This document shows positions 349-22,398 of a stretch of DNA of 64,000 nt, piece after piece. The DNA is taken from the NCBI GenBank assembly GCA_965285935.1, contig OZ260663.1, forward strand, positions 32,860,001-32,924,000, in the 5' to 3' direction. Every line of letters begins with the position of its first letter. Positions within the stretch are counted from its first letter, which is position 1. The notes under the pieces were generated by a model, which saw nothing but the letters and a program-made list of their open reading frames with translations, searched no databases and was not told where the DNA came from. This stretch comes from Ophelia neglecta. Taxonomy: Eukaryota. The translations under genes and the position numbers were made by a program.

Positions 349-1461
349 CAATCGCAGACACATTCTGATCAACTGTCGTGAATTCAAATGTTGTTGAATT
401 CATTCCTTCTGCGTACCCTGTAGGGGTTACATTCTGCATGATACTGGTTGTTCCCTCTTGAAGTTCAGTTATATTATAATCGTACTGCATTGTGGTTACA
501 ACTGTGGCATTCCCATCTGGGCTTGTAGAACTTGTTTCAATTGTGACTGTTTTCTCGACTTCTTGAGTAACGTTTACAGTAACAGGAGGCACAGATGTGC
601 TTGTCATTGTTTCGAGGGTAGCGTTCATTGACTCGGTGGTACTATACAAGTCCGTCAGAGTCATTGATACGTTACCAGTGCCAGTTTGGGGTACAGACAC
701 TTCCGCAGAGAGGGTACTATAATCGTATTTCTCGGTTGCGTTTTTCTCTACAAGGGTGGTTTCCTGGGTGACAAATGAAGATTCAGTAACATTCCTGTCT
801 GATGAGAATGTTACGGATGTGTTGACGGAGGCTGACATTGTTACGGTAGACATTACCTGGGTAGTGGCGTTATCATACATATCCGTTACATGGGTGGAGT
901 TAGGCCCCTCAGTTAACATACCTAATGTGGCTGATACATTACTCGTCAGGCCTATTGTAGTGAAAAATGTCTCTTGGGTTACATTTTCGAAGCTTTGGGT
1001 GATATTTTCAGATACGGGACTAAATGTTGTGTTCGGCATTGTCTCGTAAGTGAAGTTGGACGACTGTGTTGCAGGAAGCGTCGTCACTATATCTGTGACG
1101 GTAGCATTGTCGACGCCAGTCGTCGAGATTGAATCTAGTGTACCATTTTGTTCTAAACCTTGTGTAACGAAGGTAGTTGTTGTGGCACTTATATCTGGAA
1201 TGATGGCACTGGATTCCGAACCAGTGTCATTTATCGATGGCGTAGTTGGCACCAACGGAGTGCCGCCTGTTGGAGAAAGTGTTATATTCGCAGGTGGGTA
1301 AATTGTTATGTTCGCGGATATTGTTCCATTTACTGTAAGAGTTGTTTCAAATACTTTTGATGCCGTTCCTGTGGTTTCAAAGACTGTGCTTTGATAACTA
1401 GATGCTGTGGCTTCCGTGGAGGTGGTCCCGGTAGGCAAGGTTGGCAATGAAGTTTGTTCAC
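349..1461 (-). CDS. Gene 1 third Thr-rich stalk exon, saturated with N-glycosylation sequons
   Basis: 1113-nt phase 1-1 exon inside ORF 248..1561. Acceptor AAAG|GTGAAC, donor G|GTAAGG. Confidence 0.88.
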
Positions 1462-4400
1462 CTTTTAGGAAACATAACACAGAGGAAATTGCAAGACAAC
1501 AGAGTTGTAAGCATTCCAAACGAGCAAGTAACATGCAACGTAACATAAAATTAGGAGACACCAGAAGATATGGAAAGCAAATAGACTAAGAGGTAAATTG
1601 CATAAACATACAGTACCGTAAAATCAAAATTTTCGAAATAGTTCACCTTATTATTTTAACAGTAGTGTGCGCATTCAACGTACTACACAATCAAATCAAA
1701 TATGCAAATGTTCGAGGATGTTTTTTATCATGCATTGCGTTGCAGGTTAAAGAGTACAAACCCGTTGAAGATTGACATGTCCTGGAGTCCCCCAGTAAAG
1801 GCTTGCCCGAGGGGCAACTACATTTGAAACCACCTGGCCAAGGTGTACAAATGTCTGAACAGGCCCCGGTACAATAATCTGGAAATTGATAAACATATCT
1901 AAATAAGACATAGGGGCATAAATTTCCGTTTGGTCGAAGCATTGGATGAAGGGACAAACCAATCTTTCCCCATAACTTAATATTTATATATTGAACTGAC
2001 TCGCCGTTTTTTCTTGTTTATTTTGGAATCCGTTAGTTGCCAGATGTGTCCCAAACGCTGATGCGGCGTGGACATAATGTAGGAGTAACTTAAATATGTA
2101 ATTCAAGGCCGCTATTAATAAAGTTGGTGTTTTACCGTTTATAGTTTTAGGATGAACGATGGCAAATTGAGTAGGCCTAATCAAACCAGACACTAGTGTC
2201 TGGCTGTAGTTTCCTGTTGTGTCGGATACGGTGAGGGTCCGGAGTCCCCAATCAGAAGTATAGATGAACTCCTTATAAATATAAAGACCAAAGTAAGGGC
2301 CCTCTCCGGGCAAGGTGGCAAAACGGGTACACTCTGAAATGAAAACATCATTCGTTCACAAAAGGCCTTGCCGGGCTTTTTCTATAGTTAAAAGACGAAA
2401 AGCAGGTAGGTTCTATAAAACATACACTTACAGTCAGGCAAAAGAGCAGTGCCATTTGCACAAATTAGTGAGTGGTGGAGCTTTCTAGATATCGTTAGAC
2501 ATGAATATAAATGAAACAAGTTTAGTGTAAGTTTTGATAGGGCTACCTTCAGTGGGAATAGGACAACTATAGACTAGGCCCTCGCCTGAGTCCAGCACAT
2601 AGAGCGTCTTGGAGGAGAGGGTGTCGAGATATATGGCGTTTGGCATTGTCAGCTCTCCGAGAACTTCCTCGACATTCTCCCCCGCCATTGTACTCTTATA
2701 TACCCCTGGTCTCTCTCCAACCTCACTCCAATAAATCACACTGGCAGACAATGGAATGTAACATGATTTAATAAAACATTACGGAATTGCTGTTTCCGCA
2801 CACTCCATACACTCCATTTATTTGTGGATGACCTGCTTTCAAATACAGTGTAGCCATAAGGGATTCTAAATAAATACAGCGACTTAGTCCACGAGACAAA
2901 CTTCTGTGTTATATGTTTGATTCCTACCTGTCGTCTATTTGAATTGCCCTGGGTTTGTCCCGGCCGCTGACTAAGACTTGGTGAGTGGCATTGCTGTCGA
3001 CCAAGTCCAGTTTGGAGATCTGGCCAGACTCATACGACGTCCAGTACAGAGTCTGCTCTATAGCGTCTAAGGCCAGGCCATCCATCACCTTGTCCTCCCA
3101 CGTCTGGTATACAACACTCGTCTGACCGTCAGGAAATAGCGTCCGATAAATACGTCCGCTAAATAAACACAACAAATAAACACAACGGTAGGACAATGTT
3201 TAAGGTGGTGTGGGACCTCTACAATAGCTATTAGACATAAATTGGTCTCAATGGAATCCTAAAGTAGCAAATAAGTAATGTATATCATCATACATTGCGT
3301 TCATGCATCAAGTTTACATACAGCGGTCTTTCCCCCAAAAAAATCCCAGAAATGTTGACTTTATTCAACTTTTTGGGTAAAAAAATGCAACTTTTTTCAA
3401 ACGCCCTCAGAAAAAAATGGAACATGTTATGAGAATGACAGTTGGCTAAATATGTTCATAACAGCCTATTCTAGAAGACAGTCATACAGTTTTTCTTAAA
3501 TCCTATCCTACGTTGTGTTTTTGGGGCCATGATGACACTAGTCATCAAATAAGGTACTCATTAGTGTGTATTAATCTTTACATGCAATTTAAAAACGAAT
3601 GAAAAGGTGTATCAAAATTCTGGGCCGCCGTCACCTAGAACTAACTGCTGCAAACAGTTTTCACTTTACAGAATTCAATTATCTCAATATTTGACTGCAG
3701 TAGCTCGAATGAAAAATTGTGTATCAGTTGTAATTAAATAAAATCGACATGGCTAATAATCAACAAACAAGGTTCCAGAAGGTAGTTTTTCGCCCCTGAA
3801 CTAGGCGTAGCGGCGATAAGCTTTCACACATTTTTGGGAAACTCGCGCCAGATTATGTGACCACCAATTACACTAATTGTCATTAAAATCGCGCCAATAA
3901 AAGTGACTTTTTGACTGATTTATCGGTGAGCACCAATCATATTACTGTCAATCGCCCGGAAGCACGTGGTCGAGCCACGCTGATCCTAGACTTGGCTAAG
4001 ACCTGATGACGTCAGGCCTAACCTGGGCTGGATGGGCGGAGCAGAGATCACCGGCCCGGCTTATGACCACAATAGGTGCTAAGCCCATTATTTACGGATT
4101 AAGCCACACACTCTTGATAGCTCTAGACATACACGGATCATTACACTTTTATACTTGTTTACAAACAAATATTGCTGGATAAAATGGGAAATACGAAGCA
4201 AGATCGCCGCACATGTATTTTATTGCAAAGCCCACTACCATGCCCGGAGACGTCGCCTTTAATAGTTATTCGGATCCTAAAGACTTTCCCGATTGATCCC
4301 TAAATCAGGGCTTATCCCTTATCCCTGCTTTTCTCCGGTTCGTAGCGCCCTGAACTGTTGAATTTTAATGAGTACTACTCACCTTCCCAGCATATGCCAT

Positions 4401-7400
4401 ACACACTGTCTGCTGCGCGGGAAGCAGATGCGCTGGCAAATACCAAGGACGCATATGCGTTGGTAGGCAATCATGTAAATTACCAGTTCGTGTTGTTTAG
4501 AACTTGGACAGCTGGTAGTCAACGAGTATTTACAACTATCAGTGATTACTTTCGACCCCGGTTATTTTTTGTGATTTCACAAACACTATAGTATGTGTAG
4601 GTATCTCACCTGTTATATATACAGCTTATCACAACTATCGAAGCCTAATTGCCATTGCCTAATGGATGTTCATGCATGGCTGAACACAATAGTCATGTGA
4701 CTAACAAGACCATAACATCTCTTGTTTGTAAACAAACATTTAGCTGTTAGGCATGAATAAAAACCCTTTATTTGAGTAAATAGAAATAACTAAGAATGAT
4801 AATAAACATACCATTGGATAGAGCAAATTAAGCTCTATCTAAAACAGTACATTTTCAAAAATCACCCCATATGACATTTAACGCTGAATTAGGGGTCCCA
4901 CACACATAAGTATATGTTTTAGATTGGAATAGACCGATCACTGTACACCCCATAATATACTCCCTGGAATATATATCTCCCTTCACAACCTTTGTAAAGG
5001 GCATCTAAAACCATTTTCACCATACATACAACTTATTTGGGATTAAATGACAACACGCTCATCTAATAAACAGCAATTGCTTTATATTTTAATTATTATT
5101 TGGGACTATCGTAGTGTGTTTACTGGCTATACGCATACTATTAGTTATATATATACAGATTGACACAGCTGCCCTTACTTTGCCAAATGATGGCATTTTT
5201 TAACTCTCAACTGATGTTTGAATACGACCTTGTAAAATCGTTCCGGACATAAGGGTACGGTTTTCTTCATCACTTTAGAATGTTAAGTAAAGTGAAAATA
5301 ATAATCATATCACCTGTTAACATCCGTGAAGTAGATATAATCAGTTGTTGGGTCGTAAACCATGGCACTATAACTGCTGAAGTATTTGTTTCCCTCTGTC
5401 AGTATGTGGGGATCCTTGTTATCGGTGTCCAGTCTGATCACCTTCACCGCACTTAGATCGGCTAATACCAGATAATTATCAGGGACTGAAAGATCAGAAA
5501 CAAGAAGACATTGACACTTCATTAAAACGGTCTGAATGAATAAATGGTGAGTGTGGTCGATTTAATTTCGTGGATGTTTGTTTTGGAACATAATAAATAC
5601 CTGAACATGTTTTTCCATCACTGCTGAGGACTTTTGTATCGTAAGTTGAACAACTACACGTCGGAGTCTGGTCTTTGTCCAGAAAACAAATGGAGTCACA
5701 GCCAAACTGATCACACTGACTATCATCTGCAAACATGAAATAAGCCTTGACGTTCAACTGGGAGGGTGTGGGCACGGCGTCCCCATCCTGAACCGGGCCT
5801 GTGAATACGCACAAGCCCACACAATTCCAATCTTGGAACCCCACATATCCTACCCATTCGAGACGCTTTCTGAAGCATATAGATGAAAGGGGGATGTCAA
5901 GACCCCCCCCCCCCCTCCCTCCCCCCAATGCATCGGTGAAAAGTGTAATCAAATTTCAATATTTCATTTTGAGCAAGGCATCAACAGCATACCAGAGTCG
6001 CTGAAAAACTTTAAATCTCTGACAGTACTAATAAGATAATTGAAAATTATATTAATTGTTAGCTTAAACTGTGCAGGCAAACATGGCTAGTCTACTTTAT
6101 TCTGCGATACTAACATGTTTACCGGTAGTGCCATTCTCAATTTTTTCGATTGTTAAAACAATGTATCAATGTTTGATTTTAATGAATGTTATTTTTAGGA
6201 AAAATGCTTTGGGCTTTGAAAAGTTGGTAAATAAATGTAGCAATAATAAATAAAAGAAAGAAAATCCAAGGTAAAAATGGGTACATAATTAATGTCTGGG
6301 ATCATGTTGCTTCGATTATCAATACATAATATGCAAATCGCCCTATTTGCCGTACTTACCTGCAATTTGAGCAGTTACTTGGGTGAAGAACAAGCCCATT
6401 GGCTCTATCATACCTTCTTTTACTACTTCACCCACCCCTGTATTTACATTGTACATGTATATTCCTTCTAGTTCCCAATCACTGATAAAAAGGAAGCTGC
6501 CATTGCCTGTGATCCCAAAAGGGGTCTGAAAGGTTTTTATTTGTTTATCATTATTATTGATAAGAGCGATCACTCTGAACAGGAATGTTAAATACCAAAA
6601 TATTTCATTATTACATTCATAAAGATGGATTTTAACAAATAAATAATACAACATTACCTGTAATACTGGAGCCGCCACAACCTCCTGTGGACCAGATGTC
6701 AAGTTGAATTTGTCGATGAGCATGAGGGCTCCCGACTGGCGTGATGCAGTCTCTTGGTAGAAGGAGTCGATGATATAGACATTACCATTCAGAACGACCA
6801 CACCATTTGGAGTGTCGAGTCCATCACTGGCCACAACCTCGAGATTACTACCGTCTAAATCTGACCTTATCACAGAGGGTCTGCTCCCCCAGTCAGTCAC
6901 ATATAGTTTGCTGAAAAGCAAGTTCCAAATCAGGCCCCTCCATGAGTGTTTATTAAGATATTCATGTCCCAAATCTTCATTATAATACCTTTACAATTGG
7001 CAGCGTTAAAAAATGCTGTCATATCGATTGCAGCCTGAATGACCAATAAACTAAGCAGCATCTAACCCTTCCGCTTGGTCGATGTACAGTCCCCTGGGAT
7101 GTTCGACATCGGAGATAATGGTCCGCCTCCCGGTCCCGTCTAGGCCAATCACTTCTACCCGGTGCCAAGAAAAGGCCACGCCTTCTACCGACACGAAGTC
7201 GTGATTGGCGAAATATAGTTTCCGATTTCTCCAATCAACCACCATGCCTGGAAACAATGTCATTGACATACAAAATGGGACACTAGGTCCAACCTGTAAA
7301 AAGACGGGAGTGGACAGACTATGCACACCAATTAATCAGAATATAGTGACCGTGATATTGCGACACTTTCTATTGGTAACTATTGTCACCAAAACTGTTA

Positions 7401-10400
7401 AGAACCTGACAAGACCTTATCCTGACAAGACCTTACCCCAAAAACTTGATTATTACGGGGCTGCCAAATGACTTTACTTAAGGACTAGGAGATTTCCGCA
7501 TACCTTCTACAAACCCCAGTCCCGAAGATGACTCCAGAAAGGTTTCTTTGTTCGATCCGTCTAGGTTTACCCTCTGTATGGTCCTGCTCTGTACATCACT
7601 CCAGTACACAAACTGAAAAACAATTAACCAACACGTCTATCATGTCTGATCGGTACCCGTTTGTTACAAAGTAGGCGCTGTTAGAGGGTAACAATTAAAG
7701 CATATTGATAGAGAGGGATTCTTATATCTCACCTGATTGACTGGGTCATAAGCGATGCCCACAGGTCTGCCGCTGGTCGAGACGAGGTATGACTCCTGCT
7801 CGGTCAGGAACCGACTTCCATCAATGAAACTGATCAAACCCATCTCACCGTCGATGTACAGCAATATATCACTAGGCACTGCAAATAATGCTCATAGCGT
7901 TCTTAATGATTTCTACAACGACAATTGTTTTTTCTATTAGTATTATAATTATTGTGCCTATAGTTTGATGCGGTTATACTCTTAAGTATAATAAGGGAGT
8001 AAATGTAGTATAACTTTTAGTTCTGTTGCAACATGAAGGGTGTGACGATACTAACCGATACAATCTTTTCTGTCAGGGCCTAGAACTTTTCCACCATAGC
8101 TGGGGCAGGAACAACGATGAGAGGACAGAGAAGTGGGCAAACAGAGGGCTGAACAGCTGCTCGACAAACCACAGGCGTGCTCCACCACTGATGAAATATT
8201 ATGAATGTTGGTTAGCAAACACTAAATATTATCTGGCTAGTATTAACATGGTACACAATACAGAAAGGCACGTTGTTCTATTGGGGACCCGTTGTATCTT
8301 ACCGGGAAAGTTGGTTGGAACAGTGGCAATGCTGAATAATACTTTTGATCCGAGCCCCGAGTAGACCTGTTCTATCGAGACGTCTCCTTCTAAAACCACG
8401 GAAAACACTGCACATGTACACCAGCTTGTGATCAAGGCTTTGCCCTCCTGAATTGCTAGGCCGAAAATGGGATCATTTCCAACCAATTGGGACAGATCAG
8501 CAACAACAAAGGGAAGGACGGTGTCATCCTCTGGATTGATAGGGAAGTACTTCAATGTCTTGTCACCAGCATCGACCCAATAAAGATTTGTTGCTCTGAA
8601 AGAATTAATGAGTGTTCGTTATTTCAAGGTTTATTCAACAAAATTAAACGAGGAACCCAGAACTGTCAACACTTCTCACCCAGAATCGAAATTAATAGCC
8701 ATTTGGTTAGGCAATTCTACGTGATCACTTGAAACAATGAGAGTCCTCTCTGACCCGTCCAGTCGCGACCTCTCGATCTGCTTCGTATCTTGGTCGTTCC
8801 AAAACAGAAAGCTGTGAATAAAGAACATGAGAAGTGAGATTCTTGCTATGACAAATATTTCAAAAATTTACGCCAGTGAGGGGGAAATACAATATCGATG
8901 TTAGAATCATACCTGTTAATAGGATCTGCCAATATGCCACGCGGGTTGTACAACTTTGACGTGATCAACATCCGTTGGTAGGAGCCACTGTAATCACACA
9001 CACCGATAAGTCTCTTTTGGGCATCCGTCCAGTATAAGTTTTTCGACACCCAGTCGACAGTCAGGCCGTTTACCTCCAAAATATCTGTAACAAGGGATGA
9101 ATAGACTACTAAGTAGAAAAATATATCAGTATATGACAACACGACGACATTTCTCACACAACATTGCCCATAGGTTTTCAATCAAATTAAATATATTGCC
9201 ATTAAATTATTTACATTATGTTCTGTTCGAGCAATAGTATACTGATTATCAAGGCAGCGACGAGAAGCCTAGGCTTATGGGTCTAATAAACGTGCAATAA
9301 CATATAATAAACAAAGATATGCAATTAGTCCCGGTACCGTCTACAATTTTCGTGACTTCCGATCCGTCCAATTTACTTCTGTAAATTCCCCTGAACAAGG
9401 GTACGTTATTGGCCCAAAATAAAAACCCGGACCGAGAGTCTACAGTGAGAGCCACGATATTTCCAGGTTCCTGAAAAAAAAAACATAATTTAATATGTTG
9501 TCTTTGCATTAATCGATTCATGGATGTAAATGTATTGTTTCCACCCTTAATACTCGGGATATACATGTACATTTTATAGACATACCTGTTCGACGACTAT
9601 TTCCATCTTTCCTAGGCTAAAGAGCATAATGTGGGTCTCGTTTGTCGCATAAAAACCTGTAACATGCCCAGATTAAAAAGTATACAATATAAGCCCTATC
9701 ATAGTAACAAGATTGGATATATAATACTTAAAAGAATCTATTAACAGAGTGCTGGAAAGTTTGAAAAAAACAGCTGGCAAAGTATTAAAACAGTTCCAGA
9801 TTCTACTCTTTGAATACAACTTCTGAGTAAATGATATTGCTACTGACCCTCATCAACGGGCGTCTGAGTTGCTTCCAGCTTAACAGTCGTGTATGGAGCT
9901 CGGGGAGTCTCCTGGTCTTCTGTATCTCTCTTTGACATCTTGTCTGTCTCAATCCGCCCCGTTGACGCTGTCGATGATGCTGAAGGGGTTTTTGGTGTTG
10001 ATGACGACATACCTACTGGGCTGGGTTCTGATGTTGCTCCACCAGTGGAGAAGGTATCATTCATAGCCATACTCGACACTTTAGTTGTGAGATTCACTTC
10101 GGGTGCCGGGGACGACGTGGCATTAAGTTCAGCAGTTTGGTTGATCGCGATGGTAGGGACATTGGTGGTCAGTTCAGTCCGAGTGACCATGCTATCGTTC
10201 TTCACAACACCCTGTGTAGTTAATGACATATTGGTGCGTTCCGGCGACTCCGTGGTAGTTGTGCCATCAGCCAATGCTCCAGTGATATTTGTGATACTCT
10301 CATTCGTTACAACATCAACTGTCGGCAGCGTTGCGCTTATGGTTGCGTTCTCACTTACGTCTGGTATTGCAGCCGTAGAAGACATATCTAAACTTGTATT

Positions 10401-13400
10401 CTGCGATTCAAATGTTTGTGACAACGTGCCCTCTGGTGATGGTCTCGTCGTCCTTTCTTCAATTGGTTGTTCTAATGTTGAATCCGATACAAAAGATGAG
10501 GAAGGCATTGATCCTGCTGTTGAAGGGGGATGTATCGATGTCATCTGGATGGTAGAGGAAGCTGGTGGACTACCACTGGAAACAGAAATCTCCTGGGTTG
10601 TGTTCTGAGCATCCGGTTGTGATGGTAACGCCGACACTGGTTCTTTGGATACCGGCATTGACGTAGTAATGTCTTTGTATGTGGCAGTAGTTGAGTCACC
10701 CAATGTAGCATTTGCCGAGGGGCCTGTTGTGAATGAGTCGTTTTGCAGCGGGCTGACACTTGTAACCGTTGGGAAACTTACAGAGGAAGACGCAGTTTCA
10801 TTGGACGGGGTAACTCCCGTCGAGGCCTGGCTTGGAGCAGTTGCTCCTTGAGTGACTTGGATATCTGGACTCAGAGAGGAAAAGTCTGTCTCCATTTTTG
10901 TTGGAATGGCGGAGGTCATTAAGGCAGTCGACTCGGGTCCGCCTGAAGGCGGCGTTTCCGAGGATGCCCCATCACTTGTACCGTTGCTGCTTATTTCTGT
11001 GGTAGCTTCATACACAGCACAAGCATCACATGATCGCATGCAGTTAAGGTTCATCCAAATTTGATTTGCTTCACATTCTCCTATCTCCGCCCATTCATCG
11101 CAACGAGCTTCGTCTTCATATACATTCACGCACTCTGTCATGATAATGTATTAACAGAGTTTATATCTAATATAAAATTATCTTACCATTATATGAGACT
11201 TCAAAATCATGGAACTAGAAGTTTTGCGATAATAAACAGAATAGATGAATAACACTAATTCATTTGCATCAAAGATAAAACTAGCAAAACATTTTATTAA
11301 GCAAAACTGGAGAAAATAATTTACTTCTATAATAGTAAATAAGATAAAATGTTAGTTTGGAGTTAGTATAAGGCAGGCACAGAGACTGCTTACTGCATGT
11401 AGTGGATGCTTGCTCACAGGTCTTCAGTATGTCGTCCCACACCAGTCCTGAGGGACAAGGCAGGTTGTCATAGAACTCTCCCCCGCCACAGGCAGCGTAT
11501 ATTTCACACCCACCACATGACTGGTAGTTACCATCGGGGCGACCCTCACAGCTCGAGATACACCGTTCTTCTGACGCTAAAAAATATAAAAACATAAGCC
11601 AATTATACCTACGAGACATCAAAGAGTCATCAGAATTTGAGGAAAATTAAACCATATAATTATAGTTCGAACATGTACCGTCTTAGCTTCTCAAATCATT
11701 GATGGTAATAGTAGTTTTAGCCTTATTTTCTTTTTAATTCTACTAAATACGAAACCTGATATAGTTTACAGTGCCAAGTATATAGAACTAGCAACTCTGA
11801 TACTAACATTAGCACCGCAACGTCACTAAGAGAAAAATTATGGCTATTGATTAAACGCGGATGTGCGGAGGCGGAGGTCATGAGTTTTTCGATACACGAA
11901 GCAAAATATTGTCAGCAAGGATAGGGGTAGGGCTGAAGGTTAAGTTTAGGGTCAGGGAAAGGGTTAGGGACAGGTTCACAAAGGTCTAGTGTTGTGTCCT
12001 TATCTCGACATTTACCTCCGCAAGGCTCCGTGCCTCCGCTTTTAATCAAAAGCCCAAATTATCATGGCACCGCCACGTCACTAGTGACAAATTTACATGG
12101 CACGGTCACGTCACCAGTGACACATGATAGCGGCGTGGCAGACGATATCCCGGGTTGGAGGGGAAGTTGACAGACAGTAGACAAAACATTTAACAGCAGC
12201 TCCCCAACAACCAATTTAATGCCGGACTTAACCCAAAATAAACTACAAATTGACTTCTTTGTTTCAAAGTTGCCCCTAAATGAATGGTCACCAAGTTTAA
12301 AACCAAATGTTAATATGTGTTAACATATTATAAATATGAGTTGACTGTCCAATATGATAGTGTCTGGTATATTATCCATATGCCAATATTGTTTTGTACT
12401 TTAAAAAAGCCTCAGACCTATATGGGTTTTTTCAAGCGACAATATCATATTGGCCAGACAATAAATATAACCTGTTTTTTCGCAACTGAAACGGTACAGC
12501 TCAAGCAAAAAATGCGGACAGGCGATACAAAGCACGGTAAGCAAGATATGAAGCTAATAAAGCAAATACCACTTGGAGGGTCAGAGGGCGAGACGCATGC
12601 GCCACAAGCCTCTCGACAGTTTTCCTTCATGTAGTCGGGGTTGTTGTTACATTCTCCAAGCAATGCCCATTCCACGCACTGTGAGTCTCCTACTATATTG
12701 CCACATGCTACAGGAAAATGGAACATTCATATCAGGTGAAAGCAGAAAAAATGAGGCCGCCATTGCGTTCAGCAAACGAAATAACATTGAGAAAAAATCC
12801 AATAAAATAAGCCAGTATTCGGGTACTTAATTTATCGACTCGTTGTGTGAATGCTTTTGATGGGAATCATTAAATAAAAGGGAACATGGATTGAAAAAGT
12901 CACCATCATGCATTTTATTAAACGTTTGTTTTAAGTATTTTTCAAACAGGTACCTAGTAGATCTAAATTCTATGGATGCAGGAAATAACAATAAGTCAAT
13001 ACAGCCACGTTGTTAATAAAACCATGCAAGGATCGGAAAAAAAGGAAATGGTATTCTTAGTTAATGTCATTACACATGCACTGTAAACTCAGACTACCGT
13101 CACGGACGCACCGTCACGGACATACTGTCACGGCCGTACCGTCACGGACGTACCGTCACGGACGTACCGCCACGGACGTACCGTCACGGACGTACCGTCA
13201 CGGACGTACCGTCACGGACGTACCGTCACGGACGTACCGTCACGAACCTACCGTCACGGTACGTCCTCGGCGTACCGTCACGGACCTACCGTCACGGACA
13301 TAACGTCACGGACGCTGCAGTGCTGGAATATAAGATTCGCACTAAGGCTACCGTTTTCATTTCACATCAGCCTCCGTGCTGGTTACGGATTTAAACTTAC

Positions 13401-16400
13401 ATTAAGTGTTTAATCAATAAAATCTTCTAATTAATATGACGGGTTTTGGAGAAGGTTATATTCAGAAAAAATGCAACGTTTTCAATGGCTTGACAGTTGA
13501 GTTCAACACCTTCTTTACTACCATAATTAAATAAAGTTTGAACGAATACCATACATAATATCGGATTTGGCTTCAATTTCGCAAAAAAAAGGCCTTCAAA
13601 CGACATAAATTCAACCGTTGAAAGGCTTTGTTAGTCGTAAAATGAAGTATATTTGAAGTCACTCACGCAGTATACGCTTAATCTGTACAACTATATCTTG
13701 CTTTACCTTTCAAATAAATGATCAAAAAAACATGTTTCATTAGCTAAGGTTAGGAGTACCATATAAATATTCTTGACTTACTCTTCAACAAATAAAGAAC
13801 TGAAAGAATCCAAAGCATCTTGACAGAAATACTCCGAGAATGACTTCTAAATTTCTATTTATGAAAATTCAAAATGATTTTGTTTGTACCAATAGGTTTG
13901 AGGGTTGTCACGGGAATTAAGCTTTCTACACCCTTGCAGACACCACAAGACTGTTGGCAATTGAAGAGCATCCACGGATTGATTTCACAATGTCCGTCAC
14001 GTGACCATATGTTACAATCAGTATCGTTTCGATGGGTGTTGTTACACTCTATGTGAAATATGAAAATATCGTCACCTTAAGTTGCAATAATTCCTTCTCT
14101 CAGGTAAATTTCAATCGGGCTAGGGCTTCTTTTAAAATCACAGGTTGGTGCATTGATAGGGGTTAAATAAACTTGGCCAGGAAAGCCGATAAGACCCACT
14201 TAAATGCGAAATGTATATACAATTTTAGTTTGAACTCTTGAAACCGAGCAACTTGGTATTTTTAAGCAACCTATACTACTTTTTGACAAATCTGAGTAGG
14301 GATGAACAGAGTGCTATCGGCCATCTAATGTAACAAGCCTTGTCATAGGGCGAGGTTTCTACACCGTCGACTTCCGGTACGGTTTGTTACAGTAGAAAAT
14401 GCCTGATTGAGTTATGGAGATGTCACTATACTATTTCCAAACTCTAAAGCTATTGAACATGCAGGTGCCAGAAAAGCAAATGAGCCTATATGGTGGAGTT
14501 CGATTGATACTCATATACTACTGAGTCAGGTTACTGCATATTATACCGGTTGCAACGTTGGGGAATGTAGTGGTTTCCGCCAAGGGAGAGAATGTGGTTG
14601 CCTGGCTACCAACATATGTGCTGGGTTCTACACATGCGCCACAGGCTTCCTGGCAGTTACGAAGCATCCAAGGAGGGTTTTTTTGACACTCCCCAGTTAC
14701 CGCCCACAAGATACAATGTGTCTCTGCGTCGGGGTTTTCAGCGATATACTTGTTACCACAACCTAAATAAATATTAAATCAAAATAACTGTTTAATTTGT
14801 TGGGAAAAATAAACAAATAAAAGTTACCATACCTTCAAATATTAGTAGTGAGTAGGGATCAGTCGCGCTGTACAGGTTATTAACTTGCGTGCAATAAATA
14901 ACATAAATTAGATTAAAAATATTAAAGGAAAAAAATGCATCGTGTGAAAAAAAAACATGTTTCAGCTGAGAACATAAGAAGCTATACAAATGGAATTAAT
15001 TATATTTTCTATATAAATATTATTCATAAATTATTTGGGCTACAGAAAGGAAGAGATACATACCATGCGTATAGTATAAAGAAACGAAAAAAGGGTTGTC
15101 AACAGAATTTGACTTTAGATGGGTTTTAGAACATGTCGGCAAGATGTAAACATATAAAATGTTTTTTTCGAGGGGAAATTCTTAATAGTTAGATTTGGCA
15201 CCACACAACGCAACTGAACAGAAACACTGAAACGTTGATCCTACATTAGAGCCATGCTTGCTTTCGGTTAAACAAAAACGAAAAAGGTGATGTCCTTGAA
15301 TGGGGCGTTGTGAAAGAAAGTTATCACGAAGTGCTACAAAATCACCGGTTAGATGGATGCATAATGATTGTGTGCAAGAAATCATGTGTGTGTGAAACAT
15401 GCATGCTTGTCTATACCGATTTCTGGGCACTCGCCGCACGCCTCTCTGCAATTGAGGTTCATCCAGGCTTTATTCTTTTCACATTCTCCTAGTCTCACCC
15501 ACTCCTGGCATTCTGCGTCATTTTCGTGGTAATTGCCACAACCTATATCAGCCACCCACACAATAAAAATTAAACTTAGGGAGCCAGATACCAAGCCAAT
15601 AACAAAAACATACTGGTTCCAAGAAGGCTTGTATTAAAAAAAACACTTTAAACCATTTCAGGAAAACCCTTATTTCCATAATGTTATAAATGAGTAAGCT
15701 TTTACAGGTAGTGCATTAATTCCAGCTTGTGTTCCTTCGCCTGGTCCCACCAAGCTAACGATCAAAGCTAAAGCGTGTAGCAAGTTTTTCAAAAAACAAA
15801 TTTGGTATTTTCATACCATATTTGTATTATTTGTTTACATGCATACGGCACGCTATACAACAAATAATAATTCGCAAAAGAAATTTCAATAGCACCGACA
15901 TTGCAGGGAAAATAATTACCATTCAATTTGAAATTTAATAAAAAATACAAAACATATTAAGACATATCACGACAATGACAAGAGAACTACACGTAAAAGC
16001 TTCCATTACCAGTTACTTTAGCTGATGTACTCTGACCAAGTTCGGTGACTTCCCGTGGGCCTTGTGTCGTCACGTCCGTTACTGTAAATTAAGTAAATGG
16101 AACTTATATGAGATACTCATTAAACACAGTATATGTCGTAACCGCCACGAGGAATCTACTTAGTTCTAAACTATGTGTTTGAAATAACGATATACCTTCA
16201 ACATGATATACAATCCTATGCTATACAGTAGTTTCGAATTTCAGGCTTTACCAATGATTAAGAGTTTTAATAAGGCAGAGAAACATGTTATTGATTGTTT
16301 TTCTAATACTAATACTAACGGAGCAAAGTAAATAAAGCTAATTGTTTATGATAGTATGTCTAGGCAAACAAGCATGTAAGTGGATTGCTTCTTAGTGTGA

Positions 16401-19400
16401 TAATGAGTAATAAGAATCATTAATTGGTTTAATAAGAGCGATAGAAAGGTCACAGAGAAGACCACCGTTCGTGTCAATTAGCACAGAGGTGTGACATTAG
16501 CCTGAAAGATATCGATGACGACCGCTCGATCGTTTATCGAACTTTCAACGTGAAATAGGTCGTGCAACTATGACATTAAAATGTGCTCTTAGGTATAATG
16601 ATGGCCGTTCCTATATATGCCTGTATCCGGATTAGGTGAACTAGCGTCTATTGGGCCTTTTTTATGCTGCAGATAGCAAGTGCAAAGAATCGTGAAAAGG
16701 CGTTTCCAATGCAGCCAAATCAGTAACAATTTTGTTAGGAAATCACCTGTTGTTTGACCGCTCATATCTGTGAGGGGACGGTCAGTCAGGAACCGCGTCG
16801 TCTGGTTTAGCCTGGGTAACTGTGTAGTGACAGCTGGTAGGGATGACGTCACTACCGGTTTGTCTGCAGTGACAGTCCCTGCCGATAACGTCCCGATGAA
16901 CTCTGTGGTGAGAGTTGCTGTCAGTGCGACCATGGGCTCGGTGGTGACAGCCGGTACTGGTGTTGTCACGGACAGACCTGAGGTGACAGTCTGTGTTGAT
17001 GGCGTTAGGGGTAACTCGGTGAGGCCAGTTTCTCTGGACTTCTCGGTAATTCCTTCAGTGATATTAGAACTACCCTCAGAGGGGGCTTCTGTCACACTTT
17101 TGTCAGTCCCAGCAGATGGTAACAAACTTCTGTCACTTTCTGTTACCACGGAGTCTAGTGCTGTCATATTTGAGGTTGACATTAAACCATCGGTTGTCGG
17201 AATTGGAACAACCTCTGTCTCGTCTGTTGATAAACCTTTGGTGCCTTCGATAAGTGCCGTAGAAGATGGTTGGTCGGTTACAGTTCCAGAGGCTGCGCTT
17301 TTTGTTGCATTGTAATCAAAGGTTCCCATTTCTGTGTTTGGAACCCCCGTGTTGGTCAACCCCGCACCTAAATTGCCCTGGGAATCCCCATTGACAGGTG
17401 TAGTTATATCCACAGGAAGTACCACAAAAGTTGTCTCCTTAACTTGTTGGGTGAGTGGACCCGTCTGTCCTGCATTTGTTGTGGTTTGCATCACAGGGCT
17501 GCTCTTGTTTGTCAACTCATCAATACTTCCAGGAGAGTCTGATGATTGGATTTCTTTGCTATTTGGGCTTTCAGAGGAATATGGGACTGTCTCTGTACTA
17601 GTATAAACTGATATTAAGGGGGACGTGTAACTTTGTTGATTTTCAGTCACTTTTCTCAAAACTTCAGAAGCTGTGGCGTTGTCATCGCGATCTTCGATGT
17701 GGGTAACTGTTGGAAAATCAGATGCTTCTGACAAACTTACAGTCACTGGAGACTCGAATAAGCTTCCACCTTGTGTGGTGTTAACTTCTCCTTCCATAAC
17801 AGAGGAGCCATTCCCCCCAATAGTAGGTATATATGTACTACTTGGAGGTAACTGGCCCTCTGGAACCTCAGTGCCGGAAGCTGATGTAACTCCAGGACCG
17901 GTCGCATCTTCAGAAGCGAATGAATCTGACTTGAAACCAGTGACGTCACCCACTGATGGTTTGATAGTTGATGAAATTATATGCTGAGCAGATGCCGAGG
18001 CCGAGGTACCAGTAGCTGGTCTAGTACCACTGCCGGAAGGTGTTAGTTTTAAAGGCTCATCTGTAGTATTTTCTATTTCGTCTGTGATTGGGGAAGGAGA
18101 ATATTCTGATTGGTTAATTGTTCTTGTAATTGTGTCATTAGCAGTTGCCAGCTTGCCACTTGCGCCCGGTGGCCCCGCTATCCCAGGTTTCTCATTCTCA
18201 GAAGGCACAGGAGGGGCAATCGGATCTCCTTCTGGTAAGGAGCCCGAAGTACCTAGCAGACACAATCCACACGATCTACGACAGTGGATCCGCATCCAAT
18301 CCTCATATTCTTCATGACATTCACCATATTGGGCCCACGTTGAACATAGAGTATTGTTGTCGAAACATGCTTAAAATAGATTTATGTACCAAGCATATAT
18401 GTACGGGACGACACTTAAACAAGGACAAAAACACGAACACCAACACACCTACAAACATTCATGCATGATATTTCAAAGACAAACATGAAATTATTATATT
18501 ATTCGATATTATCAGAATTGACCTAGGAATGCGCCATACATTTAATTCATAGTTTTACATTACAACATTAAGATCAACGTATAAATTAATAAGATCACAA
18601 TAACAACACAGCTGTCAGTCGAGTAAGTTTCCATTTTCCTGGTACTTACTTTGACTGTCGCACAAGTTACACGACTTGGCGCAGCGTATCACCATCCATT
18701 CCGCGTTCAAATTACATTCTCCCTTTATCGCCCAGTCCTCACACTCCTCAGAGTCCTCATGGAGGTTCACACATGCTATTGACAGAAAATCGATGTTTAA
18801 TCACAATAATAACAGTATGCTGCAAAGTTTAAAGAGCAGTTATGTGTAGACTAGCATTTTTCCACTACAAGTCTCGCCAGATGAAGCGATTTCAGAATTA
18901 AACAATACATCCTTTGGTGTATAGTCAGGCATTTAAGTACTTATTTATACAGTGTCTTTTTTAAATCTGCTGGCTAACTCATGACTAAGAAGTAGCAAAT
19001 GGTTTAAAATGTGTTAATTTGGTAACTGATGTGTTATTTTCTTTATGAAAAAAACTGTCGCAGACGGGCAATCGAGAGCATGTTTTCCATCGGTATTTTA
19101 TTACCATTAGTTTACCTGTCATACAATTCATGTTGATTGCAGCGAAGCAACTTTCTTTTGAAATTCACTCGACAAAGAACAGAGACATGTGCACCTGATA
19201 TGCATCAATCCATGAAGCTAACAGAATGCTGTACATAGTCTATAGTCAAGCTCTAATGGTTTCTATGTGCTTAGTACAGGTGTATTGGGAAATTTTAAAA
19301 TCACGTTTTAGATGCATGTACATATTGTAAATTTTGATTAAAATGTTAAATTTACAATAAACGTAGAAACTCACAGCTATTCAGGGATTGCGTGTTGTTG

Positions 19401-20473
19401 TCAAAGAGAGCAGGCTCCGGCCCTTCGTCTATAACCTGAGAGCGAGAGGGTGATAGCAGAGCCATTAGGGCCAAGGCGCACACCAGCGTGGCCGATCCCA
19501 TCTTCCTTGGGTATCTCCTTCGGTATGGCACCGCAAATCTCTATCAGCTTGGATGCTAGACAATCAGGGACTCTTATATCGCCGGTGTCGGTTTGACAGT
19601 TTACTTCTAATCCATGATATTTGTATGAGAATTGTAACTTAAGGCACGGAATGTCAATCTGGCGCTGTGTGACCGAGGGCAGCAGACTAGCGGTGCTCAA
19701 TCACTGTGTCGGCATGGCCACGCTCCACTGCCCGCTTCATATGTAGTGGGCTGCTACTGCCACGCTGGTCATACCTGACCGCAGCTGATAGCCAAATCTC
19801 TTTATAAACAACCTAATGTTTGCCAGGTTTTTTGAAAATAAGTCGCACATAATAGTGTGTATTTACAGGTCATCAAACGGTCGAACTCGGCTACTTATCA
19901 ACTGCATTTCAACTATTTACTAGCTATACCTGGCCTGTCACACCGCAAACAACACTACCATTGAAGCTCTATAGCTTTCTATCGATCGTTTATTCTCGAT
20001 CCCAGGCAGTGGATGTGTCCTATATTACATTCTTTGTTCGGTTTATTATCAAAGCTCAGCAAGTAACAATATCCTTGTATTCATTTAACAAGGTGCCGCG
20101 CATATTTATTTGAGGAACAGCCGTTATTGGTTATGCTTCTGCATTTTTCATTACTTTAACAATTGCATCACACAGTGCGTGCTGACACACTAGCTTGTCA
20201 TACTTAATAGTAACAAGCTTGGAGTCGAAGTAGAGGATAGCATTGAAAAAATGTAAGTATTTGTATTAAAAGTGATTTGTTCATTGGTGTCAATTGAACT
20301 GTAACTATCAAATTAATAAATTGGTGACAATAAACTACTAGTATTATCTTTATAGTGTTCATGATTGTTGTGAGAAAGTTACTTTTGTCTTTTTTCGGTA
20401 TCGGCATTTCACCGCAAGCCGTTTCAGCCGAAAGAACCCACTTGATTACAAGCAAACACAGAGTTGATTTCAT
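349..20473 (-). CDS. Gene 1: giant ShKT x7 / CBM14 / mucin-like / YWTD-EGF x3 mosaic extracellular protein (3' end runs off the window)
   Basis: 28 phase-consistent GT-AG exons in transcription order: 20473-20383, 18775-18650, 18369-16747, 16081-16010, 15542-15417, 14762-14547, 14048-13890, 12707-12570, 11576-11394, 11134-9848, 9656-9586, 9470-9338, 9084-8913, 8811-8680, 8595-8303, 8187-8056, 7878-7733, 7612-7504, 7247-7067, 6910-6658, 6525-6360, 5726-5601, 5485-5314, 3158-2928, 2740-2547, 2333-2136, 1878-1762, 1461-349. Total 7960 nt (about 2653 codons), open throughout. The first exon is the least certain. Confidence 0.88.
1762..9656 (-). CDS. Gene 1: three LDL-receptor class B (YWTD) beta-propeller + EGF modules
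   Basis: Motifs LFWAN, LYWTD, LFWND, LYWVD / VYWSD, LYFAN, LYVTD, VYIID, LFISD / IYFTD, LYWTS, IYWSE, LYVLD, IYTSD. Each set is followed by an EGF exon (8187-8056, 5726-5601, 1878-1762), e.g. CSDICTPWPGGFKCSCPSGKPLLGDSRTC. Confidence 0.92.
3204..4905. mobile_element. Degenerate non-autonomous DNA transposon (Kolobok-like, TTAA target) in a gene 1 intron
   Basis: Left end TTAA|GGTGGTGTGGGACCTCTA; right end TAGGGGTCCCACACAC|ATAA (imperfect TIR). No transposase ORF. Confidence 0.45.
9848..11134 (-). CDS. Gene 1 ShKT domain 7 plus second mucin-like stalk exon
   Basis: CVNVYEDEARCDEWAEIGECEANQIWMNLNCMRSCDAC followed by about 390 aa of S/T-rich sequence (ORF 9840..11141). Confidence 0.9.
11394..11576 (-). 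CDS. Gene 1 chitin-binding type-2 (CBM14 / peritrophin-A-like) domain exon
   Basis: CEGRPDGNYQSCGGCEIYAACGGGEFYDNLPCPSGLVWDDILKTC: the DGxY, YxxC and CPxGLxWD...C hallmarks of CBM14. Confidence 0.85.
11841..12055 (+). mobile_element. MITE copy A (about 215 bp) with 6-bp TSD AAATTA
   Basis: Inverted ends GGCTATTGATTAAA...TTTAATCAAAAGCC. AAATTA at 11835-11840 and 12056-12061. Internal AGGGTTAGGG-like tract. Confidence 0.8.
12570..15542 (-). CDS. Gene 1 ShKT domains 3-6 (exons 15542-15417, 14762-14547, 14048-13890, 12707-12570)
   Basis: Each exon has C-x(7-14)-C-xx-W-xxx-G-[EH]-C-xx-N-x(1-2)-[WY]M-xx-NC-xx-[AS]CG-x-C, e.g. CGNIVGDSQCVEWALLGECNNNPDYMKENCREACGAC. All are phase 1-1. Confidence 0.9.
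13095..13314. repeat. 14-bp minisatellite (TACCGTCACGGACG)n, about 16 units, intronic
   Basis: Direct inspection of the tandem array. Confidence 0.95.
16747..18369 (-). CDS. Gene 1 ShKT domain 2 plus Ser/Thr/Pro-rich mucin-like stalk exon
   Basis: CFDNNTLCSTWAQYGECHEEYEDWMRIHCRRSCGLC followed by about 500 aa of S/T-rich sequence (ORF 16589..18295). Confidence 0.9.
18650..18775 (-). CDS. Gene 1 ShKT domain 1 exon
   Basis: CVNLHEDSEECEDWAIKGECNLNAEWMVIRCAKSCNLC: six-Cys ShKT pattern. 126-nt phase 1-1 exon, not in the ORF track. Confidence 0.9.
20383..20473 (-). CDS. Gene 1 putative signal-peptide exon (MKSTLCLLVIKWVLSAETACGEMPIPKKDK)
   Basis: Basic N-terminus plus hydrophobic core. Ends at a phase-1 donor (A|GTAACT) that matches the phase-1 ShKT exon at 18775. 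An alternative in-frame ATG lies at 20530. Confidence 0.6.
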
Positions 20474-21992: not shown

Positions 21993-22398
21993 TTAATACC
22001 CGTACGGCACGTACATCACCCGCCCCGGCTTGTCGTATACGCCGTTATTGTAACCAACCACAACCCGTGGGTCCTTGGTTTCTCGATTCGAACGGTCCCG
22101 ATCTATATGAGCCCGGTTACGCTTCTTGGCATACATCATCTTGTCACTATAAATAATTGGATGTCTTTAGGTTACATGATTATATTGAAAGTCTAAAAAG
22201 TCAATATCGTGATTGTGCTGTTGTTAAGTTTATTGACGCAGTAGTATTGAATACATCAACCACTTACTTTCTCCTGAAGCAGACGATAATTCCGACGACA
22301 AAGAAGAAGCAGAGAGTAAGAGCGGCCACGGGTAATATACCTATGGCCCACACTGGGAACTCCTGTCCCCGAGGCGTGGGTGAGCCTGTGCTGCCATC
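21993..22398 (-). CDS. Gene 2 transmembrane helix and cytoplasmic tail exons
   Basis: [28 protein letters not shown] followed by the stop-transfer RR. Tail ends [26 protein letters not shown]. Confidence 0.88.

Follow-up and report, generated by a model that had tools for sequence, protein, structure and literature searches.

The window, a stretch of 64,000 nucleotides from Ophelia neglecta, carries on its minus strand a predicted gene of 38 exons and ~33 kb, which begins at 19501, runs to ~13.4-13.7 kb left of the window and would encode a type I membrane glycoprotein of ~3,540 residues. In the splice model all introns (37/37) are GT-AG, the phases are consistent and no in-frame stop occurs through any of the exons. 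The first-pass annotation ran to 349 and put the length at a minimum of 2650 residues. Position 349 is, however, a phase-1 splice donor, after which the window holds the start of a 4.6-kb intron (1-348), and the gene continues leftwards for 13.7 kb in eleven more exons, collinear with those of a contig from a related species (L005). Against that minimum, the in-window coding part of the model comes to 2,627 residues. Pfam searches were run on single exons, one at a time, and the joined frame was used only for residue counts and the stop check; the signal peptide, seven ShK domains, CBM_14 domain, stalks and three YWTD propeller-EGF units named in that annotation were all recovered on the minus strand. 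From the N-terminus, the domain order is signal peptide, two ShK domains, stalk 1, four ShK domains, CBM_14, one ShK domain and stalk 2; the middle part comprises the three propeller-EGF units, stalk 3 and a PTS tandem-repeat mucin domain; the C-terminal part comprises a putative HYR domain, a sushi-like module, a four-cysteine module with an RRKR motif, Ephrin_rec_like, a TM helix and a conserved tail of ~200 residues. Independent DNA contigs cover 8200-11870 without a difference, and the indel polymorphisms in such contigs (six of six) are intronic. These contigs come from the three sequencing runs listed, none of them recorded as RNA; they span introns, and are therefore DNA that carries no transcript information.

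The preferred first coding exon (19375-19501, minus strand) provides an ATG at 19501, a signal peptide of ~22 residues in which small residues come after a hydrophobic core, a short linker and a phase-1 GTGAGT donor. This ATG, with A at -3 and G at +4, is the first one after an in-frame stop. The signal peptide had been placed earlier at an ATG at 20473; its presence stands, but that start (20387-20473, an open frame beginning MKSTLCLL, with a possible phase-1 donor near 20387) has a weak Kozak context, and from the sequence we prefer 19501. The upstream segment may be an alternative first exon or may be non-coding.

Seven minus-strand exons match ShK (PF01549) at 21.5-37.8 bits against the Pfam cut-off of 20.9. 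Domains 1 (18650-18775, 31.8 bits), 3 (15417-15542, 29.8 bits), 5 (13932-14048, 24.3 bits) and 6 (12570-12707, 37.8 bits) each occupy a phase 1-1 exon. Domain 2 (37.7 bits) lies with stalk 1 in a single exon (16747-18369), domain 4 (30.2 bits) is joined to a short Thr-rich linker (14547-14762, with the donor at 14547 or 14610) and domain 7 (21.5 bits) is joined to stalk 2 (9848-11134), in an exon whose two ends are both kept in the L005 orthologue. A profile made from the gene's own ShK exons detects exactly seven such domains in the 64-kb window.

With the six-cysteine ShK fold present seven times, the modules could be read as potassium-channel blockers of the sea-anemone toxin type, and the protein as a tethered toxin or channel modulator. 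The nearest solved ShK domains, those of a probable zinc metalloproteinase (2mcr_A) and of MMP23 (2k72_A), are weak Kv-channel blockers, which would fit such a role. The six cysteines, in invariant columns, are kept along with a W, a G and an M in 7/7 domains; however, the position of the toxin Lys-Tyr dyad is occupied by Trp-Met in six of the seven and by Tyr-Met in the other, and the match of the toxin BgK to the ShK profile is not significant (E 0.57). ShK domains lacking the dyad are also found on mucin-like proteins of nematodes, the Tc-MUC mucins (SXC/ShK) of Toxocara canis, and have been described there as without toxin-like function (PMC7333891). A toxin role is thus extremely unlikely. 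ShK-bearing astacins and MMP23, which supply the best matches of the ShK profile, offer a further likeness to the present gene, as in them ShK is appended to matrix-type proteins. Toxocara mucins are small and secreted, and the metalloproteases carry a single ShK domain adjoining the catalytic domain. Unlike the protein described here, neither group is known to have propellers, CBM_14 or a membrane anchor.

The CBM_14 (peritrophin-A) chitin-binding-type domain, a phase 1-1 exon at 11394-11576 on the minus strand, matches PF01607 with 31.6 bits against a cut-off of 22.1 and covers profile positions 1-52 of 53. It retains six cysteines and the usual aromatic positions, and its matches in the PDB are the CBM14 domain of chitotriosidase (6so0_A, E 0.005) and 4z4a_A. 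The exon is the lone copy at the locus; at least 60 paralogous exons are present elsewhere in the genome, the closest of which form tandem CBM14-only arrays. The six-cysteine domain is held in common with peritrophin-type proteins and chitin-binding mucins, whereas here a single CBM_14 lies within an ShK array and is linked to the core of a receptor. As to conservation of the N-terminal half, nothing was found in word searches, which see only proteins of similar length, either with the CBM14 exon or with a profile of eight ShK exons.

The first-pass annotation also proposed that the ShK modules are displayed on glycosylated stalks, and the composition of stalks 1-3 agrees with this: they are cysteine-free, with 31-36% Ser+Thr and 11-24 N-x-S/T sequons per stalk. 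Stalk 1, within 16747-18369, has ~500 residues (31% Ser+Thr, 11 sequons), stalk 2, within 9848-11134, has 386 residues (36% Ser+Thr, 15 sequons) and stalk 3 (349-1461), which ends in the phase-1 donor at 349, has 370 residues (36% Ser+Thr, 24 N-x-S/T sequons). Together with the PTS mucin exon, which contains 27-nt tandem repeats, they make up four cysteine-free stretches of PTS type, 292-500 residues long and with 31-58% Ser+Thr.

Beginning with the signal-peptide exon, and up to and including the donor of the exon with ShK7 and stalk 2, every intron is in phase 1, and the earlier proposal of a single exon-shuffled gene is on this account most likely correct. The same regularity raises the alternative that the phase 1-1 ShK, CBM14 and stalk exons of this one gene are optional cassettes, the main product being much shorter (for instance, the signal peptide joined to ShK7, or a subset of the modules) and the 3,540-residue form rare or never made. 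Phase 1 closes each of the nine exons up to ShK7, the signal-peptide exon included, so that any subset could be skipped with no frameshift; there are two candidate first exons, and for the Nematostella homologue the annotation lists four isoforms, of 1,781-2,084 residues. Nothing speaks directly against such a product; however, each of the eight domain exons (seven ShK, one CBM14) is intact, with all cysteines and canonical splice sites, and they are therefore maintained. We regard a mainly short product as rather unlikely.

The three YWTD-EGF units have 265-285 residues each, with Ldl_recept_b and EGF matches. The first strand of propeller 1 is encoded by a 71-nt mini-exon (9586-9656, minus strand) that is entered in phase 1, left in phase 0 and has neither a start codon nor a signal peptide. 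Four exons with Ldl_recept_b matches follow (9470-9338, 9084-8913, 8811-8680 and 8595-8303), which are 46-75% identical exon-wise to L005, and then EGF 1 (8056-8187), recognised through weak FXa_inhibition and EGF_4 matches. Propeller 2 takes five exons, again matching Ldl_recept_b (7878-7733, 7612-7504, 7247-7067, 6910-6658 and 6525-6360), and EGF 2 (5601-5726) matches EGF_LRP2 weakly. Propeller 3 takes four exons, 61-69% identical exon-wise to L005 (5485-5314, 3158-2928, 2740-2547 and 2333-2136), and EGF 3 (1762-1878) scores 26.8 bits with FXa_inhibition; the comparison with L005 indicates no extra exon within the 2.1-kb intron that propeller 3 holds. The best solved relative of propeller 2 is LRP4 (8s9p_B, E 1.3e-34), and LRP2 and LRP6 are also among the best solved sequence matches. 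Vertebrate LRP4, LRP5/6 and LRP2 are likewise type I membrane proteins with tandem six-blade YWTD propellers, each with an EGF domain; the present locus differs from them in having no LDL-A repeats and no NPxY tail, and in its additional ShK, CBM_14, mucin, putative HYR and Ephrin_rec_like modules. The lack of LDL-A repeats, noted already in the first reading of the sequence, holds for every frame of the locus: Pfam Ldl_recept_a matches no exon, and with a profile built from 150 repeats of LRP matches the highest score among 1,133 open frames on both strands of the 35-kb locus is 9.4 bits (E 0.08), compared with 31.8 bits for the positive control.

The exons left of the window are also on the minus strand and fall in two stretches with coordinates local to each, namely L002 (G000:C5:32850001-32860000) and L003, a further stretch carrying the end of the tail. 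The PTS mucin exon (L002 5734-4856) is followed by the putative HYR domain, which remains below the Pfam cut-off (18 bits for its second half against 21.7) because it is split over two exons (L002 4590-4481 and 3471-3333); the second half aligns to the HYR of Lingula P0049 with an E-value of 3.6e-6. The sushi-like exon (L002 3239-3006), which has no Pfam match, aligns to Owenia P0057 (E 2e-8) with the Cys/Gly/Trp/Pro pattern kept, and its structural model was set aside as unreliable (pLDDT 52). The four-cysteine module with the furin-type site (L002 2636-2366 and 2223-2033) is succeeded by Ephrin_rec_like (GCC2/GCC3; PF07699, 43.5 bits; L002 1125-961), and the very next exon (L002 835-688) supplies a TM helix of the kind that the first-pass annotation proposed to look for leftwards. 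The NPxY tail that it proposed to look for along with the helix did not appear, as both NPxY and PPxY are absent from all three tail exons (L002 312-125, from the splice model, and L003 9652-9548 and ~6959-6637). The stop codon is at 6637-6639 of L003, with AATAAA polyA signals 6-172 nt past it.

The convertase-type motif of the four-cysteine module, RRKR here and RKRR in L005, falls in the same alignment column as the motif of seven named homologues, and R-x-K/R-R stands right behind the fourth cysteine in 9/11 of the core-family members compared. The model of the first half of the module (pLDDT 74) is of alpha/beta type with a strand-helix-strand-loop-strand course, and has the motif in a low-confidence loop between strands. 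No sequence match to the PDB was obtained for this exon and no Foldseek match to its model at E <= 0.001, and SEA, NIDO, AMOP and VWD were not detected by Pfam in the sequence of the gene's exons. In VIA-align, SEA domains account for 5 of the top 15 rows with weak Z-scores of 3.5-4.2, the best matches including the SEA domains of TMPRSS6, MUC16 and a transmembrane protease. From these weak structural matches the module might tentatively be called SEA-like.

The core of the protein, from the propellers to the membrane anchor, has homologues in sea anemones, Owenia, Lingula, hemichordates and amphioxus, which are automatically named 'LRP4/6-like' and, in those tested, have no LDL-A. They include Nematostella vectensis XP_032221449.2, Actinia tenebrosa, Owenia fusiformis CAH1780232.1 and Lingula anatina XP_013382434.1, and among hemichordates Ptychodera flava XP_070576042.1, Saccoglossus XP_006825084.1 and Glandiceps XP_077998234.1. 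Like the present protein, members have three or four YWTD propellers, a four-cysteine module with the R-x-K/R-R motif and Ephrin_rec_like just before the TM helix; HYR was found in each one scanned with Pfam, and EGF and Sushi were significant in some only. Our exons are collinear with this family over the three propellers and Ephrin_rec_like, and in tblastn Owenia P0036 and Lingula P0049 align in order over all three propellers. The cytoplasmic tails of the members are unrelated to the one here. CBM_14 is absent from the family, and ShK is confined to sea anemones, where two members have a single copy adjoining the membrane, unlike the N-terminal array of seven ShK and one CBM_14 in this gene. 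The top protein-search matches, P0001-P0004, were rejected as relatives, being bacterial multi-YWTD proteins with dockerin or Ig domains and another architecture, and the ESM Atlas gave no usable match with Owenia P0036. The search for a characterised orthologue yielded predicted proteins only, and in the literature we found no description of an ShK/CBM_14/Ldl_recept_b architecture or of the core family. The first-pass annotation had likewise not recognised the architecture from a characterised protein. The family, which extends from cnidarians to deuterostomes, appears never to have been studied.

In core-family members the signal peptide abuts the first propeller strand, whereas here ~1,290 residues (the seven ShK domains, CBM_14 and two stalks) lie between them, and this sets the protein apart as a variant. 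What mini-exon 9656-9586 encodes is homologous to the residues right after the signal peptide of Owenia, Lingula, Ptychodera and Nematostella; in eight homologues this strand comes immediately behind the signal peptide. The first-pass annotation had placed the ShK and CBM14 modules where LDL-A repeats normally sit; this view finds no support, as the core family is devoid of LDL-A in every member examined, from Nematostella to hemichordates. Since the family has no LDL-A and its signal peptide directly precedes the first strand, the ShK/CBM14/mucin block is an N-terminal insertion and not a replacement.

That homologues in other phyla begin directly at the propeller is also what would be expected of two adjacent genes, a secreted ShK/CBM14 mucin (from 20473 or 19501 to ~9848) and a separate LRP-like receptor starting with the first propeller; the CBM14 exon, moreover, would meet a stop at 11284 if read unspliced. 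However, the first-strand exon, which lacks both start codon and signal peptide, is entered in phase 1 from the stalk donor, and the ShK7 exon likewise lacks a signal peptide. The contig of L005 breaks off 433 nt upstream of the ShK exon found in it, so that comparison with it starts at ShK7; from there the two species are collinear down to the tail, with most exons 45-75% identical. In L005 a single open frame of 1,047 codons takes in the ShK domain, a stalk of ~1,000 residues, an in-frame intron of 100 nt and the first strand of the propeller. This is a strong argument against two separate genes, as the ~100 nt between stalk and strand are too short to hold a terminator together with a promoter and a signal-peptide exon. 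The ShK7-stalk-propeller junction, the end of the stalk included, is conserved between both species. Two genes are accordingly very unlikely. Most likely the locus is one real invertebrate gene, in which a stalk with seven ShK and one CBM_14 has been grafted onto the front of an old LRP-like surface receptor. Taken as a whole, the best explanation is probably a single 38-exon gene for a putatively chitin-contacting type I membrane glycoprotein with a glycosylated extension on a receptor core.

As to function, the likeliest reading of the sequence would be a furin-processed, membrane-tethered, mucin-like receptor whose CBM_14 tip contacts chitin. In the old receptor core the propellers may serve as protein-binding platforms and the tail in signalling or sorting, and a furin-type convertase would cut the juxtamembrane module to leave two associated chains. 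The core would have gained a long glycosylated extension that binds chitin at its tip through CBM_14 and presents the non-toxin ShK modules as further binding sites. Such a membrane-tethered mucin might link the cell to, or sense, a chitin-containing layer such as the gut lining, a chaetal sac or a tube, and might shed its ectodomain; a gut location, like chitin anchoring itself, is something we infer.

The protein is an unusual variant of known designs. Transmembrane mucins such as MUC1 and MUC16 have long Ser/Thr/Pro-rich stalks, a cleavable juxtamembrane module, a single TM helix and a cytoplasmic tail, to which the layout here, with its PTS exon of 27-nt repeats, can be likened. The YWTD propellers have no known counterpart in mucins, however, and cleavage would be by a convertase at RRKR and not autocatalytic. 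A more far-reaching reading by analogy is that an ancient cnidarian-bilaterian receptor family (three or four propellers without LDL-A, HYR/sushi, an SEA-like hinge cut by a convertase, and GCC2/GCC3), mislabelled 'LRP4/6-like', was turned in this worm lineage into a chitin-tethered, force-sensitive mucin, in which pull on the chitin-bound tip would part the hinge at its furin cut and send a signal by way of the conserved tail, as in Notch or MUC1; this we consider unlikely and offer as speculation.

On the one-gene reading, exon shuffling would have rebuilt a surface receptor by setting a block of symmetric phase-1 exons (ShK, CBM_14, mucin) precisely at the join of signal peptide and first propeller. 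The gene also brings into view an older receptor family with a conserved convertase site, filed under LRP4 or LRP6 despite the missing ligand-binding repeats. Should the link to chitin hold, the protein would act at the cell surface as a tether of an epithelium to a layer of chitin, in a group of animals for which little is known of such links.

Further sequences from the locus and its relatives allow some minor observations. The sushi-like exon is single-copy in the genome, and L006 is therefore not matched by a paralogue in this genome. L006 also ends short of the ShK/CBM14 region, and L007 and L008 are short stretches of genomic DNA from the region of the propellers.

Pfam matches obtained exon by exon agree with the ShK, CBM14 and YWTD-EGF content described in the first-pass annotation. 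In this 762 Mb assembly, a chain of exon-sized open frames (stop-to-stop) runs along the minus strand from 20.5 kb to 0.25 kb of the window; each frame was searched singly, and no joined protein was used in searches or folding. ShK (PF01549) was matched in seven frames at 21.5-37.8 bits (cut-off 20.9), CBM_14 (PF01607) in one frame at 31.6 bits over profile positions 1-52 of 53, and Ldl_recept_b together with EGF-type models in frames between 9.5 and 1.7 kb. A profile built from the gene's own ShK exons recovered exactly seven such exons in the 64-kb window, and all seven domains keep the six cysteines, with a Trp, a Gly and a Met likewise invariant. Within the window the three stalks are cysteine-free, contain 31-36% Ser+Thr and carry 11, 15 and 24 N-x-S/T sequons. 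The absence of LDL-A repeats, also claimed earlier, was confirmed, since an LDL-A profile made from 150 repeats of LRP-type matches scored at best 9.4 bits (E 0.08) on 1,133 open frames from both strands of the locus, against 31.8 bits for a control protein with one LDL-A.

GT-AG introns preserving the frame were sought between each pair of neighbouring coding frames and the exons were then walked for stops, yielding a model of 38 exons with GT-AG introns throughout and no in-frame stop. It encodes 2,627 residues within the window and about 3,540 in the whole protein, a total that could shift by some tens of residues with the choice of acceptor for the last exon. Phase 1 applies to all introns from that of the signal-peptide exon through the donor of the exon shared by ShK7 and stalk 2, so that the ShK and CBM_14 exons are symmetric 1-1 cassettes; they carry the classic mark of exon shuffling, in line with the earlier proposal. 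As start codon we prefer the ATG at 19501, with no earlier ATG in its frame, an A at -3 plus a G at +4, and a good signal peptide running on to a GTGAGT donor, over the ATG at 20473 chosen originally, which is signal-peptide-like and lies in a weak context; either could serve. Polymorphism within the sample lends modest support to the exon model, as all six indels in 8200-14199 are intronic, and among 31 single-base variants in the same interval eight are exonic and none creates a stop. Repeats were seen in two introns of this part: a short, very high-copy repeat at 11870-12060, between ShK6 and CBM_14 (contig depth 10,000-30,000 versus about 30 elsewhere, with many loose contig ends at 12010 and 12054), and a 14-nt unit in 16 tandem copies at 13095-13314, between ShK5 and ShK6.

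Position 349, formerly taken as the left limit of the gene, is the exact phase-1 donor of stalk 3, and the frame continues beyond the window. In the 30 kb to the left that were added to the analysis, the minus strand holds a PTS exon (Ser+Thr 58%, 27-nt tandem repeats), a probable HYR domain split across two exons and followed by a single sushi-like exon that is single-copy in the genome, two exons for an unnamed four-cysteine module that bears RRKR, Ephrin_rec_like (43.5 bits), an exon with a TM helix and basic residues after it, and a cytoplasmic tail in three exons. The stop codon lies at 6637-6639 of L003, the second 10-kb stretch left of the window, with AATAAA 6, 115 and 172 nt past it. 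A search for a TM helix and an NPxY tail had been suggested in this direction; the helix was found, and the tail exons, when scanned, contained neither NPxY nor PPxY. The next gene downstream is of NACHT/NWD1 type, with a 486-codon exon at 2-1459 of L003 (G000:C5:32840002-32841459) matching NACHT, AAA_16 and an NWD1-type winged helix. At the other end, a same-strand neighbour terminates at 21996-22416 of the window (TM-helix exon 22416-22267, tail exon running into a stop near 21996), which marks how far the gene under study can reach on its 5' side. GC skew peaks strongly (0.37) at 26001-28000, where GC is raised to 0.46.

It is very improbable that the ShK/CBM14 half and the propeller half belong to two separate genes. 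The three sequencing runs listed for the species are all DNA, as their contigs cover introns, and one read contig spanning 8200-11870 shows zero differences from the assembly, which rules out misassembly where the two halves meet. A 71-nt mini-exon (9656-9586), lacking both a start codon and a signal peptide, encodes the first strand of propeller 1; it is entered in phase 1, matching the phase-1 donor at 9848, the end of the stalk-2 exon. The corresponding residues come straight after the signal peptide in eight homologues from other phyla, and hence an independent receptor gene would need its signal-peptide exon exactly at the stalk exon. Further evidence against two genes comes from L005, a contig of a related species carrying the orthologous locus, which reaches 433 nt beyond its ShK exon on the 5' side, so that the comparison covers the ShK7-type exon onward. 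Over this range the exons are mostly 45-75% identical one by one and collinear, starting at the ShK7-type domain and reaching the cytoplasmic tail. A single open frame of 1,047 codons runs there from ShK through a stalk of some 1,000 residues and an in-frame intron (about 100 nt) into the first strand of the propeller. As a further point for one gene, both ends of the stalk-2 exon are conserved in L005; its middle is not, and the stalk evolves fast. At 1200-2100 of L005 this stalk includes about 60 tandem 7-residue units (PSTTVGQ / PSTTVEP); its length is about 1,000 residues, versus 386 non-repetitive ones in Ophelia neglecta. For the upstream cassettes (ShK1-6, CBM_14), which may not all be included in every transcript, word searches with the exons gave no orthologous match. 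The feature itself is real, and its gene is both intact and conserved.

The propeller-2 frame, searched against 1.84 billion representative proteins (E <= 0.001), gave 867 matches, the top ones being bacterial multi-YWTD proteins. Animal matches were screened for a match to the non-propeller exons and then named, and most were scanned with Pfam. The members of the family to which this core (propellers to membrane anchor) belongs are Nematostella XP_032221449.2, a related protein from Actinia, two from Owenia, two from Lingula, one each from Ptychodera, Saccoglossus and Glandiceps, and a Branchiostoma protein; database names call them 'LRP4-like' or 'LRP6-like'. YWTD propellers are common to all named members, as is (by BLAST) an Ephrin_rec_like domain immediately ahead of the membrane anchor; HYR scored in five of the six scanned with Pfam, and the Sushi and EGF models were significant in only some. 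No LDL-A was found in any member scanned or tested, and a limited literature search found no description of the family. The core seems to be an unstudied and mislabelled family with a conserved putative convertase site, which is the more general point of interest.

CBM_14 was found in none of the 175 retrieved proteins, and ShK only in sea-anemone proteins, one each, near the membrane. From this we infer a lineage-specific insertion of about 1,290 residues (ShK, CBM_14 and mucin) at the N-terminus of an old receptor. The first-pass annotation had placed ShK and CBM14 where LDL-A repeats normally sit; they would represent an insertion and not a replacement, in a family that apparently never had LDL-A. 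At the position of the toxins' Lys-Tyr dyad this gene's ShK domains show Trp-Met or Tyr-Met, and they are closer to the ShK domains of a probable zinc metalloproteinase (2mcr_A) and MMP23 (2k72_A) than to the toxins. At least 60 exons in the genome are paralogues of the CBM_14 exon; the nearest ones, with identities reaching 59%, belong to tandem arrays made up of CBM14 alone, where ShK exons are absent. Dense arrays of this kind occur at L009 (C12:35962001-35972000, eleven in 10 kb), L011 (C12:61403001-61413000, eight) and L010 (C2:33438001-33448000). These probably represent genes for multi-CBM14 proteins, either peritrophin-like or chitin-binding mucins, and the family from which the lone CBM_14 exon likely came. 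Mucins with dyad-less ShK domains are known from Toxocara (PMC7333891). The architecture is unusual, yet its parts and its plan are both known.

In the four-cysteine module, alignment shows the cysteines to be conserved and places R-x-K/R-R directly after the fourth Cys in the gene, in L005 and in seven of nine named homologues checked. The predicted structure of the RRKR exon (pLDDT 74) comprises a strand, a helix, a strand, a low-confidence loop with RRKR and a further strand. Foldseek gave no match to this model at E <= 0.001; with VIA-align, five of the 15 top rows were SEA domains (TMPRSS6, MUC16, a transmembrane protease), and because their Z of 3.5-4.2 is in the noise range, a SEA-like or Notch-HD-like hinge is a lead and not a result.

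The protein is probably a type I surface glycoprotein with four mucin-like stretches totalling about 1,550 residues. Glycosylated mucin domains extend about 2.5 Å per residue, at which these stretches would keep the tip at a distance of some hundreds of nanometres from the membrane. This tip would present one predicted chitin-binding module among seven ShK modules, above a middle of three propellers of the LRP4/6 type, which serve as platforms for protein binding in known receptors, and a base with a module for presumed cleavage by a furin-type convertase, followed by TM helix and tail. Mucin-like stretches, a predicted cleavable base, TM helix and tail make the layout the same as that of a membrane-tethered mucin, and such a molecule would probably tether an extracellular layer that contains chitin, or sense it, and its ectodomain could be shed. 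If the species is an annelid, chaetae, gut lining and tubes are candidate chitin structures. The tail exons had no match in Pfam or among the tails of homologues from other phyla, and represent a conserved region inside the cell that had gone unrecognised. Against L005 the tail is mostly 47-79% identical over aligned exons; its conserved exons, 62-79% identical between the two species, lie at 6637-6987 and 9548-9652 of L003 and at 13055-13141 and 14582-14905 of L005.
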